Sequence record: OQ828465.1
Length of the DNA stretch: 64,000 bases
Direction: 5' to 3' (one strand)
Below, in pieces: positions 12,401-41,675 of this stretch. Made by a program: the position numbers and the translations under genes. Each line of letters opens with the position of its first letter. The first letter of the stretch is position 1. The notes under the pieces were generated by a model, which was given only the letters and a program-made list of their open reading frames with translations, did no database searches and was not told the DNA's origin.

Positions 12401-12465
12401 AGGAGAGCTATTTAGCTCTCCTTTATTGCATTAAATTTTTTTTGAAATCTATATTACATATTTGG
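12401..12465 (+). promoter_or_regulatory. terminator + early promoter cassette
   Basis: aggagagct/agctctcct hairpin then attgcattaaattttttttgaaatcTATATTAC (12450-12457). Confidence 0.75.
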
Positions 12466-12493
12466 TCAAGTCATATCAAAATAGGTAGTTATA

Positions 12494-12667
12494 ATGCTAG
12501 CATTACATTCACTACTATTATTAGTTATAGTGATTTGTTATATAATTCATAAGTGGTTGTGGTATACTTTCAATATGTTTAAACTAAAAGACATTATTAA
12601 AAATAAAGACAATTTAACTAATGATGAACTATTAAAATTACTCATTGATAAAATAAAGGCAACCTAA
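12494..12667 (+). CDS. 57 aa membrane microprotein
   Basis: read by hand: MLALHSLLLLVIVICYIIHKWLW...; AGGT RBS; TAATG coupling to next gene. Confidence 0.6.
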   Translation: MLALHSLLLLVIVICYIIHKWLWYTFNMFKLKDIIKNKDNLTNDELLKLLIDKIKAT

Positions 12668-13134
12668 TGTATCCATTCTTTACAGGTAATGAGAAAGTTA
12701 CTGTAGATGTTCTTGATGATAAACATAATCTACATAGAAGTTGGACTGATTATAAACATCCCATCACGACGCGTGTGGACGGTAAACTAACCAATGTGTG
12801 GTATAAAGTTGAACCACCGATGAGTGCTAAGGATATTGAAAATAACTTTACAATTGACAAAGATAAAGTTAAATTATCTAATCGTTTGCACCAAGCTTTA
12901 GATGCAACGTTGATTAAAAATGAATTAGAAGAGTTTAACAAATTAATTGATCTATGCGTAAAACATGTTAATTCAGTTAGTATTCATCTAGGTCTTACTA
13001 TTTGGAAATTAGCAGATACTGTAAAATATGAAAAAGCAGATTTAAAGAAACTATTTAATGCACATTATACCAAATCTACTGAACTTGTAAAAGAAAAGAA
13101 TATAGTGCCCTCAGTAGAAGATATCTTCCTATAA
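12667..13134 (+). CDS. hypothetical protein
   Basis: 155 aa ORF. Confidence 0.8.
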   Translation: MYPFFTGNEKVTVDVLDDKHNLHRSWTDYKHPITTRVDGKLTNVWYKVEPPMSAKDIENNFTIDKDKVKLSNRLHQALDATLIKNELEEFNKLIDLCVKHVNSVSIHLGLTIWKLADTVKYEKADLKKLFNAHYTKSTELVKEKNIVPSVEDIFL

Positions 13135-13156
13135 TTTATTTAAAGGTAATACAAAT

Positions 13157-14065
13157 ATGCTAAAGGTAAAATCATTACTTACTGGCCATATTCTTCGAGC
13201 TACCTATGATTGGTTTCTTGAGAATAACTTCAGAGATATTCTAATTGTAGCACATACTCAATTAGTACCTGATTTATCTGAGGTAGCTCTAAAGCATGCG
13301 AAAGAAGATCACACTATCACTTTCAATATCCATCCACGCTGTGCAAAGAATTTTTATATCAGTGACGAATATATCTCTTTCAATGTAACAGTAAATGGAG
13401 TTGGGGTCAGTATTAAACTTCCTCTTTATGCAGTATTGGGTGTAGTTACACCTATTGATGATAATTCTAACGCATTCTTTGAAATGCCGCTAGTGGATAG
13501 ATATCTCAATGCAGATACTATTCGTGCAACATTAGAAGGAACTGTTAATAATGTAGTTGACAAAAACCCAGTATTAACTACCGTAGGTAATGTCACTGAG
13601 GTTAATTTTAAAAATAAAGCCGATACCACTAATGGTAAGTTAGTTGTAAGGAATACATCTGAGAATGAGCATGATCAGATGATTGAAAGCGCCATTAACA
13701 GAGTAACTGAATTTAGTAATCCAGAATTAGATGCACATATTAGAGTAGCGGTAACTGCAATTAAACAGAATGCACCAGAATTAATTATGGATTGGTGTGA
13801 GCGGGTTATTAATTGTACACGTAATGAAAACTATCAGGATAACATCAATGTACTTATGATGGAACTCCTCAGTTACCCTATTTCAAATGTGGTTAGTGAA
13901 TCAACTGTGGACTCGGGTGATAATACATCTAATTCATTTGACAATGATGTAAATAAGATGGTTGAGGATTTCAATAATTCTTCCAATTCGCAGATTATTA
14001 TTAATAAACCTTCTCGTCCTACTGGTCCACCAAAACTCACTGTTATTAAAGGTGGTAAGAAATGA
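13157..14065 (+). CDS. sspB: SspB-like ClpXP adaptor protein with long insertion
   Basis: ILRATYDWFLEN, ITFNIHPRCAKNF..SDEYISFNVTVNG, IKLPLYAVLGV match the SspB core; C-terminal RPTGPPKLTVIK resembles the ClpX-binding tail. Confidence 0.8.
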   Translation: MLKVKSLLTGHILRATYDWFLENNFRDILIVAHTQLVPDLSEVALKHAKEDHTITFNIHPRCAKNFYISDEYISFNVTVNGVGVSIKLPLYAVLGVVTPIDDNSNAFFEMPLVDRYLNADTIRATLEGTVNNVVDKNPVLTTVGNVTEVNFKNKADTTNGKLVVRNTSENEHDQMIESAINRVTEFSNPELDAHIRVAVTAIKQNAPELIMDWCERVINCTRNENYQDNINVLMMELLSYPISNVVSESTVDSGDNTSNSFDNDVNKMVEDFNNSSNSQIIINKPSRPTGPPKLTVIKGGKK

Positions 14066-14319
14066 ATGCAACTTTAGCAATTCTTTTTAGTAGTATCAGT
14101 ATCGCTGGTTATCAAGCCAATGGTGCATCGCAGTCAACCACTGAGTTCTCTGACATGACTACTTGTTTTAGCGCGATTGAGCGTATTCAAAAACTAGCTA
14201 AAGCAAGTGCTATTCGTAATAATGTAGAGACTGTAAAAATCAGCGATGGTGTTCTATTACGTTATTTTTCTTCTAGTACCAGTAAAGTAGAACATACTCT
14301 AATCTGTGTAAATAAATAG
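14062..14319 (+). CDS. small exported Cys-pair protein, similar to 56102..56323
   Basis: hydrophobic N-terminus, EFSDMTTCFSAI ... LICVNK. Confidence 0.7.
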   Translation: MNATLAILFSSISIAGYQANGASQSTTEFSDMTTCFSAIERIQKLAKASAIRNNVETVKISDGVLLRYFSSSTSKVEHTLICVNK

Positions 14320-14327
14320 GTACGGAT

Positions 14328-15035
14328 ATGTCTGAGAAAATGTATTTATCTTTTTCTGGAATTGGACACAATGACGTAATCAAACAAGATCTTAATGGAT
14401 TCATTCCAATGGATGTATCAACTATTGATACTGAAGTGGCTGATCGATTATTTTATACTCCATTCAATAGTTCTGAACCAGATACGTCATTACCTAATGT
14501 TGCTAATGTGGTATTCAAGGTATTACCTATCCATATCGAGGATAACACTATCTGTGTTTTAGATAGTTGTTCTAGTACCGAATACTCATTGAATGACTTA
14601 GTTGATACCAGTGTCTCATCATTAGAAACATATGGTCCATTAATAGATTTACGTAGTAGTGATCCAATTGAGACATATGCTAATCAGGCAGTGTATACTT
14701 GGTTAAATAAGAATATCTGTGATATCGAATTTGAAGTACATGGCGGGCTGCAAGTGCAACTAACTGCTGACCAAGTGCGTTCCAATGTTAATGCATTTGT
14801 AGCAGGTATTGATCTTGACATCGACGATAAATTGATGGTATATGTGGTGATTAAAATCAATGATCGTTTATACGATGCTTGGTCTAGTCAACATGTGGTG
14901 GAACCATTAACAATGTATCATGTACAAGGTGGTCATGAGCCTATTGTCTATAGTGAAACCCATATTGAAAATAGCCTATTGCGATATGCTAAAGAGAAAG
15001 GTTGGGCTGAAATTTTGACTCGTATTGGTCTGTAA
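14328..15035 (+). CDS. hypothetical protein
   Basis: 235 aa ORF. Confidence 0.85.
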   Translation: MSEKMYLSFSGIGHNDVIKQDLNGFIPMDVSTIDTEVADRLFYTPFNSSEPDTSLPNVANVVFKVLPIHIEDNTICVLDSCSSTEYSLNDLVDTSVSSLETYGPLIDLRSSDPIETYANQAVYTWLNKNICDIEFEVHGGLQVQLTADQVRSNVNAFVAGIDLDIDDKLMVYVVIKINDRLYDAWSSQHVVEPLTMYHVQGGHEPIVYSETHIENSLLRYAKEKGWAEILTRIGL

Positions 15036-15140
15036 TAAAAATACTTTTAATAGACTAATATTATAGGCAAAATACTGGCCGATTGGTTAGTTGCGCTTAG
15101 GGGGTCCTTCGGGACTCCCGTATGCCGTCTAGGAGGTTTT

Positions 15141-15434
15141 ATGTATACAGTTACACTTGAACAAGTAGGACACCGTATACAGTCTAGTTTAAGTGCTTTT
15201 GTAATTAGACCGTTTGAAAATACCATTACGCATAATGATACGTCTTATTACTTGATTATGGGTAAAGATGATTTCGATAACATGCACATGGAATGGCGAG
15301 ATGTAGCTGTAGCTGATAGTCAAGCCGTTATAATTGCTACATACACTCCATCAAAAAACTCATTTAATCTTGTAAAAAATGAATTAGGTATTCCGGTTGA
15401 AATCAAATACAAACGGATAGAGGTTGATCTGTGA
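15141..15434 (+). CDS. hypothetical protein
   Basis: 97 aa, AGGAGG RBS. Confidence 0.8.
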   Translation: MYTVTLEQVGHRIQSSLSAFVIRPFENTITHNDTSYYLIMGKDDFDNMHMEWRDVAVADSQAVIIATYTPSKNSFNLVKNELGIPVEIKYKRIEVDL

Positions 15435-15461
15435 TTATTAGTAAGACTAGAGGAATAAAGT

Positions 15462-15662
15462 ATGGATCGTCTTGATGAAAGAATCGCATTCAGTGTAAAG
15501 TCGTACAAAATTTTCAATGCTCTCACCCATGGTCGAGTTCGGGCATTGATTATTAACTTTAAAGATGGTAAGGGTACGATCGTATCTATTAGTGATGAGC
15601 GCCGCCATGATAAACATCTCTGGTTCAACTGTGGACTAGTAGACAATCCGAGGATCAAGTAA
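15462..15662 (+). CDS. hypothetical protein
   Basis: 66 aa, GAGGA RBS, TAATG coupling to thyA. Confidence 0.75.
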   Translation: MDRLDERIAFSVKSYKIFNALTHGRVRALIINFKDGKGTIVSISDERRHDKHLWFNCGLVDNPRIK

Positions 15663-17128
15663 TGGAACAATATCTTAATTCAATCCGTTTAGTTAAAGAA
15701 CACGGTGTACATAAAGGTGACCGTACTGGTACTGGTACTCAGAGCATGTTTGGTCAACAAGAACGTTATAGTCTGCGTAATAATCAGCTACCAGTTGTAA
15801 CCACCAAGAAGATTCATCTAGCTTCTGTAATTCATGAATTGTTCTGGATGCTGTCAGGTGATACTAAGGTGGATTACCTGATCGCTAATGGTGTACGCAT
15901 CTGGAACGAGTGGGTTAAACCTGAAACCGCAGTATATGAGCCGATGACCGATGAGGCCGTTCTTAAAGCAGTAACTGCCCTCATTGGTGCCCCATTCGTA
16001 ATGTACTTACATTGTATGAACGATGACTCTACTCCATTCATTGAGACTGTAGCGGAATTCGAGTCGGGTATGACTCCAGAGACTATTCAGGCCTTCTGGG
16101 ATGAATATCCAGTTAACCGTGAGGAAATCCAATACATCATTGGAGTTAGCGTAACGTCGTGGAATAGGTTCGCTACTGAAGGGTTCGATGAAGCCAAAAA
16201 TCCTGAAGGTATTCGTGCTGAATATAACAAGCGACTGTATCGTGCTTTGATGCATAAAGAACCAGAGCGTCTGGTCGGCGGCGATCTAGGTGCTGTTTAC
16301 GGTAAGACATGGCGTAATCTTGAAGACACTCGTGTAATCCCTAAATATGAGTGGTTTGATTATGAGAAGCGTGGTTTTGACTTCGTGGCGGATATCCCAG
16401 GTACAACCATGGAAACCGATAGATGCGTGGTTACTCGACGTATCGACCAAATCCAAGACATCATCGATCAACTTCGCACCAACCCGGATTCTCGTCGGAT
16501 CATTGTTTGTGCATGGGCGCCACATCTTATTGATGAGCAGGCACTCCCACCTTGCCACGCATTTATTCAGTTCTGGACCCGTGAACTGACCGTAGATGAA
16601 CGAGTGCAAGCTCTAGACCAAACCCAGTTCGAAGCTGATGCTTATCATGATAAGATTAGTGGTGAGATTACTCGTGGTCAACCTCCATTCGATAGTGCTG
16701 AGCAGGTTAAAGCACTTCTGCGTGTCTGTCGTGGTTATGAAAAGGCTACAGATGAAGCAGTAGTAGAATGGCTGGATCAACATGGTGCTCCGAAACGAGC
16801 CATCAGTTGTCAACTCTATCAAAGATCTTGTGATACTTTCTTAGGAAAACCCTTTAACATCACATTCTATAGTCTGCTGACTCACATGTTAGCTAACCAA
16901 ATGAATATGATTGCTGAAGAGTTTATCTGGACTGGTGGTGATGTACATATTTACTCTAATCACCAAGAACAGACTGATCTTCAATTAACTCGTGAACCGA
17001 AGGTTCTACCAACTATTCGTTTCAAACAAGAAGCTATTGGTAAAGATATTCGGGAAATTGGTGTAGATGATTTTGTTATCGAAAACTACGAATATCATTC
17101 ACACATTGCTGGTAAAGTTGCTGTCTAA
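15662..17128 (+). CDS. thyA: thymidylate synthase with two large insertions
   Basis: GDRTGTGT, VTTKK, HELFW, IWNEW, GDLGAVYG, SRRIIVCAW, ALPPCH, LYQRSCD..LG.PFNI, GGDVHIY. Confidence 0.97.
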   Translation: MEQYLNSIRLVKEHGVHKGDRTGTGTQSMFGQQERYSLRNNQLPVVTTKKIHLASVIHELFWMLSGDTKVDYLIANGVRIWNEWVKPETAVYEPMTDEAVLKAVTALIGAPFVMYLHCMNDDSTPFIETVAEFESGMTPETIQAFWDEYPVNREEIQYIIGVSVTSWNRFATEGFDEAKNPEGIRAEYNKRLYRALMHKEPERLVGGDLGAVYGKTWRNLEDTRVIPKYEWFDYEKRGFDFVADIPGTTMETDRCVVTRRIDQIQDIIDQLRTNPDSRRIIVCAWAPHLIDEQALPPCHAFIQFWTRELTVDERVQALDQTQFEADAYHDKISGEITRGQPPFDSAEQVKALLRVCRGYEKATDEAVVEWLDQHGAPKRAISCQLYQRSCDTFLGKPFNITFYSLLTHMLANQMNMIAEEFIWTGGDVHIYSNHQEQTDLQLTREPKVLPTIRFKQEAIGKDIREIGVDDFVIENYEYHSHIAGKVAV

Positions 17129-20335: not shown

Positions 20336-20410
20336 TCCTCCCTTCGGGGAGGCTTTATATTTTATTTTTTGTATTCAAACATATTTTAACAGTATATTAC
20401 TAATGTGAAT
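20336..20410 (+). promoter_or_regulatory. terminator + early promoter cassette
   Basis: cctcccttcggggaggc, T-run, gtattcaaacatattttaacagTATATTAC (20393-20400). Confidence 0.8.
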
Positions 20411-20778: not shown

Positions 20779-20835
20779 GCCCTCCCTTCGGGGAGGGCTA
20801 TTGCACTAAATTTTATTTGAGATATATATTACATG
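20779..20835 (+). repeat. terminator + early promoter cassette (copy of 5658..5715)
   Basis: 45 bp identity with 5658; TATATTAC 20825-20832. Confidence 0.85.
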
Positions 20836-23839: not shown

Positions 23840-23915
23840 ACCCTCCCTTCGGGGAGGGTTTTATTTATCTTTTTTTGTATTTAAACTATTTAAAAAGCTA
23901 TATTACAAATATGAA
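23840..23915 (+). promoter_or_regulatory. terminator + early promoter cassette
   Basis: accctcccttcggggagggt, T-run, TATATTAC 23899-23906. Confidence 0.8.
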
Positions 23916-27506: not shown

Positions 27507-27515
27507 AGTCATAAA

Positions 27516-27575
27516 CCCTCTCCCAAAGGAGAGGGCTTTTACATTAAATTTTTTTTGAAATCTATATTACACTAA
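27516..27575 (+). promoter_or_regulatory. terminator + early promoter cassette
   Basis: ccctctcc-caaa-ggagaggg, then attaaatttttttgaaatcTATATTAC (27563-27570). Confidence 0.8.
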
Positions 27576-30187: not shown

Positions 30188-30265
30188 GCCCTCCCATTGC
30201 GGGAGGGCTTATATTTTATTTTTTTGTATTTAAAGCATTTTAAACAGTATATTACAAATGTGATA
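30188..30265 (+). promoter_or_regulatory. terminator + early promoter cassette
   Basis: gccctccc-attgc-gggagggc, T-run, TATATTAC 30248-30255. Confidence 0.8.
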
Positions 30266-41172: not shown

Positions 41173-41637
41173 ATGTATCACATATCGACAATATACCTTG
41201 GGGATTATGTTTTATTAAGGCCATATATTCCAAGTAATAGAGCTGATGGCGAAGACAGTGTAACCAACCGTATATGTGTGGCTCCATCAGTTATTGAATG
41301 TATTGCAGCTAAAAGCGGGAGTTATGATATCGATCTTAATTTACTTGGTTCTAAATAAACTATTTACGCATACCGAAGTAATTCTACTGACTACATTATA
41401 GGAAATGTACCTGATCAAAAACAATATAGGGAACACTGGTATTTAAAACCAACTTTATTTGCGTATGTTGGCTCTCTGCAATTATTAGAGACTGGGGTGA
41501 TTAATGTAAGTAGTGAAGTCGATATGCATTCTAAATTAATGGTATCACATCGGTTAAACTACTTCAATAATATTATTAGTAAAGAAGAACTAATACACCA
41601 TTGGCATATAGAGGCTTTATCTATTTTAAATGGTTAG
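41173..41637 (+). pseudogene. second ART-like gene interrupted by an in-frame TAA at 41356-41358
   Basis: same frame stays open after the TAA for 92 sense codons (TIYAY...NVPDQKQYREHWYLKP...ILNG), completing the YHIS/RICVAP/VPD/EHW pattern. Confidence 0.7.
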
Positions 41638-41642
41638 ATCAT

Positions 41643-41675
41643 AATTTATTTAAGATCTATATTACAAGTGTACTA
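41643..41675 (+). promoter_or_regulatory. early promoter
   Basis: aatttatttaagatcTATATTAC (41658-41665). Confidence 0.7.

Follow-up and report, generated by a model that had tools for sequence, protein, structure and literature searches.

The gp232 gene and its transcription unit

The window analysed here is the whole stretch of 64,000 nucleotides from sequence record OQ828465.1, numbered from its first letter, and on its + strand it carries a gene for a 302-aa protein, called gp232 below, that terminates in RPTGPPKLTVIKGGKK. The gene is the orthologue of PHIKZ232 of phage phiKZ (99% identity), which bears no product name in the reference record, and the region 12600-14400 is matched at 99-100% identity by 47 phiKZ-type Pseudomonas aeruginosa jumbo phages. 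Its frame is intact and its identity amounts to 97.7-100% across 47 full-length phage records. The Churi and Bobae records label the gene 'stringent starvation protein B', and gp232, whose own PHROG is 25970, matches PHROG 8945 'SspB-like' with E=6e-4. The SspB-likeness of this gene or its relatives is already public, by annotation (PhiPA3 gp270, Churi, Bobae, Moabite, RAY gp039) and through one paper. New here are the clade-wide VIxGGK signature together with the KPLLDFG motif, the four-helix insert of the phiKZ lineage that is predicted to fold, and a count showing that half of the positions conserved in bacteria are lost. The gene and its surroundings comprise the following features.

12401..12422, + strand: GC-rich hairpin, terminator of the preceding unit and first half of a terminator-plus-early-promoter cassette
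12430..12457, + strand: AT-rich early-promoter-like element ending in TATATTAC (12450-12457), near-identical to the copy at 27535-27570
12494..12667, + strand: PHIKZ230.2 orthologue, first ORF of the unit, 57 aa, hydrophobic N-terminus, own PHROG only
12667..13134, + strand: PHIKZ231 orthologue, 155 aa, not SspB-like
13157..14065, + strand: gp232 CDS, 302 aa, ATG start, 33.8 kDa, pI 5.2
14062..14319, + strand: 85-aa ORF (PHROG 32080) with its ATG overlapping the gp232 stop (ATGA), a signal-peptide-like N-terminus and two Cys
20340-20400, 20780-20832, 23850-23906, 27510-27570, 30200-30255, 41610-41665: further cassette copies, a hairpin followed by an AT-rich stretch with TATATTAC

The cassette of hairpin and AT-rich stretch with TATATTAC thus recurs at six more sites in the window (20393, 20825, 23899, 27563, 30248 and 41658). 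Early promoters of phiKZ have an AT-rich consensus and are read by the virion RNA polymerase (PMC10914365), and we infer that the element at 12430-12457 is such a promoter. The unit that follows it consists of gp230.2, gp231, gp232, the overlapping 85-aa ORF and gp233, and no terminator-like sites were found on the + strand from 12422 to 15700. The phiKZ reference record splits the stretch of the 85-aa ORF into PHIKZ232.1 (23 aa) and PHIKZ232.2 (54 aa), which points to a frame-breaking difference in either the reference or this genome. The 85-aa product could be a member of a putative family of exported helical proteins with two cysteines that the window encodes elsewhere. Contigs from the RNA libraries of four studies cover the gp232 gene, one nanopore cDNA contig spanning 12395-14995; such contigs cannot show transcript starts, ends or levels. 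Further downstream, at 15026-15100, directly upstream of the gp234 orthologue (15141-15434), the summed contig depth of a nanopore cDNA library rises from about 20 to more than 6000, suggesting that a strong promoter lies here or that a short transcript is very abundant.

Neither gp231 nor gp233, nor the 85-aa ORF or other ORFs nearby, matches a Pfam family, and the only PHROGs to which they belong are orphans. A second gene with an SspB fold adjoining gp232 was considered and found no support, the hhalign probability against the SspB alignment being 1.2% for gp231 and 0.2% for the 85-aa ORF. For gp233 this probability is 9.5% over only 27 residues of the N-terminal helix; its residues 113-139 (window 14664-14744), PIETYANQAVYTWLNKN, weakly resemble the motif A-x-Y-x-W-x3-N of the SspB N-terminal helix. 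In RVTF4, PhiPA3 and a metagenomic relative, the genes that follow the SspB-like gene showed no detectable relationship to gp233. The next gene in PhiPA3, gp271 (L003 4614-5366), carries a macro-domain-like annotation (histone macroH2A1 C-terminal domain) and is unrelated to phiKZ gp233 by BLASTP.

An SspB-type domain and an XB-like tail

Along the chain of gp232, six parts can be told apart.

13157..13537, + strand: residues 1-127, SspB-type substrate-binding domain with an N-terminal helix (8-22) and a beta core, assigned by sequence and fold
13538..13660, + strand: residues 128-168, Asn/Thr/Val-rich low-confidence segment with a possible beta-hairpin at 139-150, from the model and the composition; varies in relatives
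13661..13876, + strand: residues 169-240, predicted four-helix domain with the motifs NAPELIxDWCERVIxC and ELxSYP, phiKZ lineage only
13877..14011, + strand: residues 241-285, disordered acidic Asn/Ser-rich linker with KMVEDFNN, from the model and the composition
14027..14050, + strand: residues 291-298, PPKLTVIK, XB-like putative ClpX N-domain docking motif by matrix score
14051..14062, + strand: residues 299-302, GGKK C-terminal extension, its GG invariant in all jumbo-phage homologues examined

Residues 8-127 of gp232 form a genuine SspB substrate-binding domain. Using phmmer against the PDB, the SspB proteins of E. coli and H. influenzae were matched at E=1.4e-8 to 5e-7 over residues 10-113, the match at E=1.4e-8 covering residues 11-108. 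The AlphaFold2 model, which rests on an alignment of 88 sequences, reaches a pLDDT of 93-97 across residues 11-120, and with this model Foldseek retrieved 13 SspB chains (E=1.7e-8 to 4e-7, target TM 0.73-0.83), among them the SspB of the ClpXP delivery complex 8ET3. An initial sequence-only reading had placed an SspB-like core at about residues 10-100, and these results bear it out. The HMM comparison that it had proposed came out in its favour in part: the NCBIfam models of the ClpXP specificity-enhancing factor match with E=8e-13, but far below their equivalog cut-offs (135-319 bits), and the Pfam SspB model (PF04386) gives 24 bits, just below its cut-off of 27. Since the equivalog cut-offs are far from reached, gp232 is to be regarded as a member of the SspB family and not as an equivalog.

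To describe the groove, 25 domain positions were compared that are at least 70% conserved in a panel of 78 bacterial SspB sequences. Of these positions gp232 keeps 13 (52%), against a bacterial leave-one-out mean of 81% and a 5th percentile of 50%. A homologue search for the SspB of P. aeruginosa gave other gammaproteobacteria only, so that the bacterial panel serves for comparison. The other phage SspB homologues keep 36-56%. Retained positions include A15, Y17, W19, N23, I54, N57, P60, F75, G81, P89, A92 and F108. The N-terminal helix (8-22) is predicted with pLDDT >95 and keeps four of its seven conserved positions (A15, Y17, W19, N23); the dimer helix is probably preserved. The beta core retains 9 of 18 (bacterial mean 82%), and conserved residues are substituted by A77V, R78T and F79V (ARF to VTV), E100I, G105N, P27D and P44A. 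The fold is thus preserved, and judged from these residues the groove appears remodelled. High conservation in SspB is restricted to the dimer interface and the ssrA-binding groove (PMC9963277), and recognition of ssrA may therefore be lost in gp232; with only 13 of the 25 positions kept and a remodelled groove, it is not to be assumed. A literature search for SspB groove mutants returned none.

At the other end of the protein, the tail RPTGPPKLTVIKGGKK, as quoted in the sequence-only reading, proved to be XB-like, resembling the ClpX-binding (XB) consensus of bacterial SspB far more closely than chance would give. A scoring matrix was derived from the 61 of 78 bacterial SspB representatives that carry an exact C-terminal P-x-L-[RKT]-[VI]-[VI]-K. 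On it PPKLTVIK reaches 18.1 bits, which is also the average for the 61 bacterial tails, and one in 5000 shuffles of gp232 attains this score. It is also the best score among the 141 ORFs of the window, where the runners-up reach ~11 bits, none of them C-terminal, and no other C-terminal XB-like motif was found among these ORFs. A second ClpX-docking motif within gp232 was rejected, the next-best matrix score being -5 bits. The motif sits four residues before the C-terminus and not at the C-terminal end. The XB peptide is reported to bind the ClpX zinc-binding domain at any position of a polypeptide, with nanomolar affinity when fused (PMC12373786). Since it works at internal positions, the GGKK extension need not block docking. 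The earlier proposal that GGKK alters the engagement of ClpX finds no support, given this independence of position and given that the jumbo-phage clade as a whole carries the GGK extension as its signature.

The spacer and the jumbo-phage relatives

Between the SspB domain and the tail lies a spacer of 163 residues (128-290), which the sequence-only reading had described as about 180 aa of extra, partly acidic linker. The extra residues (~175) and an acidic linker (241-285) are there, but residues 169-240 are a predicted folded four-helix domain, with a pLDDT of 85-91 in the whole-protein model. Folded alone together with two relatives, residues 163-244 gave a mean pLDDT of 85 and a pTM of 0.75. 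The spacer is hence not a flexible disordered linker of the SspB type; only residues 241-285 are linker-like, with a net charge of -5 and 44% Asn/Ser/Thr. The last 17 residues of gp232 are basic, and the AlphaFold2 confidence rises slightly over the tail after the disordered stretch.

Searches with the four-helix insert returned little. Foldseek against the PDB gave nothing below E=1.6, the ESM Atlas gave no match, and with VIA-align the best Z was 8.0, followed by 7.5 for the ribosome-binding four-helix bundle of Zuotin, both below the level that is meaningful for helical bundles. As modelled, the insert matches only generic helical bundles, none of them specific. The motifs NAPELIxDWCERVIxC and ELxSYP lie within its helices and are the best conserved between gp232 and P0002, a metagenomic relative described below. 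C214 and C220 (window 13796-13816) form a CxxxxxC pair (WCERVINC) within the insert, invariant between gp232 and P0002, and could, in a gp232 dimer, form a four-Cys metal or disulfide site. Residues 130-197 (window 13544-13747) locally resemble the superantigen-like protein SSL7 of Staphylococcus aureus (3KLS chain X, residues 106-171, PDB E=1.8e-4) and match NCBIfam PRK13346 with E=5e-6. The SSL7 and Fur matches, found at residues 115-198, are probably fortuitous. The region differs in the closest relative, and its structure prediction is poor.

When 1.84 billion representatives were searched exhaustively and without a profile, only 93 matched at E<=0.001. The single full-length relative outside the phiKZ species is P0002, an environmental protein of 318 aa with 61-64% identity, encoded on a 1.8-kb contig. 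Next closest, after P0002 and fragments, are six proteins of 201-265 aa that have in common with gp232 a distinctive C-terminal module, made up of KPLLDFG, then about 15 residues, then PSRYKGKPKLTVIKGGKK. The KPLLDFG-type motif (K-P-L-L-D/E-F-G/P), some 25 residues ahead of the docking motif, occurs in the tails of P0026, P0073, P0086, P0007, P0008, P0097, P0099 and P0220 and does not occur in bacterial SspB tails; the copy in gp232 is degenerate, KMVEDFNN, at residues 267-274 (window 13955-13978). By tblastn, relatives were located in PhiPA3, PA1C/PS119XW-type phages, Psa21, D6 and RVTF4, and also in the Serratia phages Moabite and Kodama, Pectobacterium phage vB_ParM-25 and Klebsiella FBKp24-type phages. 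Several are annotated accordingly: PhiPA3 gp270 carries the GenBank note 'similar to stringent starvation protein B', the RVTF4 protein is a 'stringent starvation protein B', Moabite gp200 a 'stringent starvation protein B family protein' and the Kodama protein an 'SspB-like protein'.

All 13 jumbo-phage (chimallivirus) SspB-like proteins compared (gp232 and 12 others, including those of PhiPA3, PA1C-type phages, Psa21, D6, RVTF4, Moabite, FBKp24 and metagenomic contigs) end in [LF][TSRM][VL][IL]-x-G-G-[KR]-x, the two Gly being invariant. Their domains share only 21-29% identity and their middle regions are unalignable, so that the tail, as the best-conserved part, appears to be under selection. 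As XB motifs, the Pseudomonas-phage tails score about 8-21 bits. Two enterobacterial jumbo-phage tails, PFSVIKGGKE and PFSVIDGGKE, score 0.9 and -4.4 bits while their GGK is still invariant; the conserved unit may therefore be VIxGGK and not XB proper, and its partner may accordingly be other than ClpX. On the domain tree the phage rows cluster, with 3 label changes against 10.5 expected, a value that none of 500 shuffles matched or undercut; this is compatible with monophyly. At least 8 jumbo-phage lineages conserve both domain and tail, and in the three loci compared (phiKZ, PhiPA3 and the metagenomic P0007 contig) thymidylate synthase is encoded a few genes downstream of the SspB-like gene. 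Another short metagenomic contig, which codes for a protein of 148 aa with the comparable tail LSLVQGGKD, looks phage-like too.

Possible roles of gp232 and comparison with known systems

Published data show that PHIKZ232 is made during infection. The protein was found by co-fractionation proteomics in infected PAO1 cells and was absent from virions; it was enriched in the shell-enriched sample and present in high-molecular-weight SEC peak groups, and its mNeonGreen-tagged form gave a diffuse cytoplasmic signal that spared the phage nucleus (PMC10449902). The main text of this SEC-MS study and those of its supplements that were examined contain no link between PHIKZ232 and ClpX. [quoted passage not shown] By phage TnSeq, 22 and 43 insertion sites were recorded in PHIKZ232 (PMC12676376 supplements), which lies within the orf184-304 block, most of which is reported as non-essential and for which interaction with the host has been proposed (PMC12676376). 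Because 22-43 insertion sites are tolerated, the gene is non-essential in the laboratory and any role of gp232 must be conditional.

Taking domain and tail together, a phage protein that engages the ClpXP of its host would be the most economical reading of an SspB core followed by an XB-like tail. With moderate confidence, we consider gp232 to be an SspB-family protein whose tail would dock on the N-domain of ClpX and whose remodelled groove would hold a peptide ligand. It would then be an accessory protein of phiKZ-type jumbo phages, cytoplasmic, non-essential and presumably expressed early, that probably dimerises via its N-terminal helix. Through its PKLTVIK tail it would attach to the zinc-binding domain at the N-terminus of host ClpX, and the cargo held in the groove would be delivered to ClpXP for degradation, or the substrate choice of ClpXP would otherwise be re-programmed during infection. 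That gp232 may bind a ligand, instead of being a bare docking peptide, is suggested by the complete substrate-binding domain in which W19, N57, F75, G81 and P89 are retained.

An alternative that we hold to be rather unlikely is that gp232 acts as an anti-adaptor or decoy, docking on the N-domains of ClpX, possibly as a heterodimer with host SspB, and mainly blocking host adaptors and N-domain-dependent substrates. Such an effect would protect phage proteins or prevent the protease-triggered activation of toxin-antitoxin or abortive-infection responses; T4 PinA and T7 gp4.5, inhibitors of Lon, offer a parallel. The strong XB-like tail beside a diverged groove suits this possibility, as do residues A15, Y17, W19 and N23 kept in the N-terminal helix and the behaviour of the free XB peptide, which is reported to alter ClpX activity and to bind the zinc-binding domain of ClpX (KD about 35-80 nM; PMC12373786). 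Yet for blocking the tail alone would suffice, while every homologue keeps the full substrate-binding domain and lineages add domains to it. Because the full domain and the lineage-specific inserts are kept, we favour the binding of cargo over a pure decoy, although sequence alone does not tell delivery of cargo from competition with the adaptors of the host.

It is quite unlikely, in our estimation, that gp232 is an SspB fold working independently of ClpX, with its hydrophobic-x-hydrophobic-I-x-G-G-K tail and KPLLDFG motif docking on a different partner, e.g. an AAA+ machine other than ClpX or a phage assembly such as the nuclear shell, and with the beta domain as a generic peptide clamp. The invariance of GG where XB-likeness lapses, as in Moabite-type and FBKp24-type homologues, and a second conserved tail motif without counterpart in bacterial SspB would fit this explanation. 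The presence of PHIKZ232 in the shell-enriched fraction and its co-elution with high-mass phage peak groups (PMC10449902) would fit as well, but an adaptor bound to ClpXP would likewise run at high mass, the tagged protein does not sit at the shell but is spread diffusely through the cytoplasm, and the Pseudomonas-phage tails are indistinguishable from bacterial XB by score. Finally, the gene could be a decaying captured host gene without current function, given that it is dispensable in laboratory TnSeq and scores under the curated family cut-offs. This we regard as very improbable, since the frame is intact at 97.7-100% identity across 47 full-length records, the protein is expressed, and domain, tail and the position upstream of thymidylate synthase are conserved, domain and tail in at least 8 jumbo-phage lineages.

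A broader version of the ClpXP reading can be formulated, which as a whole is unlikely. In it, the VIxGGK tail and KPLLDFG would together make up a docking module of jumbo phages, and the SspB scaffold would have been turned into a re-programmer of ClpXP with a new cargo groove, acting either as degrader of a host factor (e.g. a defence or stress regulator) or as anti-adaptor against protease-triggered abortive-infection or toxin-antitoxin responses in nucleus-forming phages, with the lineage-specific inserts (the four-helix domain and its CxxxxxC pair) giving target specificity. Recruitment of defence proteins by the insert, as the sequence-only reading had suggested, is pure speculation.

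At present gp232 is an annotated homologue of putative function that is dispensable in the laboratory. The literature searched holds no functionally characterised phage-encoded ClpXP adaptor, and two recent jumbo-phage reviews within it do not mention SspB. Should gp232 and its relatives indeed dock on ClpX, nucleus-forming phages would possess a conserved means, acting in the cytoplasm, of steering the proteolysis of their hosts, which would bear on host takeover, counter-defence and the choice of strains for phage therapy. The natural tail variants could moreover guide the engineering of bacterial protein degraders based on the XB peptide.

Compared with bacterial SspB (E. coli, H. influenzae; PDB 1OX9, 1OU8, 8ET3), gp232 has in common the fold of the substrate-binding domain with the N-terminal helix, the near-invariant W, N, F, G and P of the family, and a spacer followed by a P-x-L-x-V/I-V/I-K motif near the C-terminus. 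It differs in being twice as long, with a four-helix domain in its spacer, in the replacement of about half of the conserved residues (ARF by VTV, Glu by Ile), in the GGKK that follows the motif where the bacterial chain ends, and in being encoded by a phage gene that is apparently expressed early. The annotated jumbo-phage SspB-like proteins (PhiPA3 gp270, RAY gp039, Moabite gp200, those of RVTF4 and Kodama, PHROG 8945) belong to the same clade as gp232; the VIxGGK-type tail is common to them and the KPLLDFG motif is present in most. Next to these named relatives (144-262 aa), gp232 with its 302 aa is the longest but one, its four-helix insert is found again only in P0002 (318 aa), and its KPLLDFG is degenerate. 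Among phage modulators of host AAA+ proteases, ClpS homologues are known from jumbo phages (PMC7824862). Common to gp232, these ClpS homologues, T4 PinA and T7 gp4.5 would be the concept of a phage accessory protein by which an ATP-dependent protease of the host is redirected or blocked, while the protease and the mechanism are different and there is no sequence relationship.
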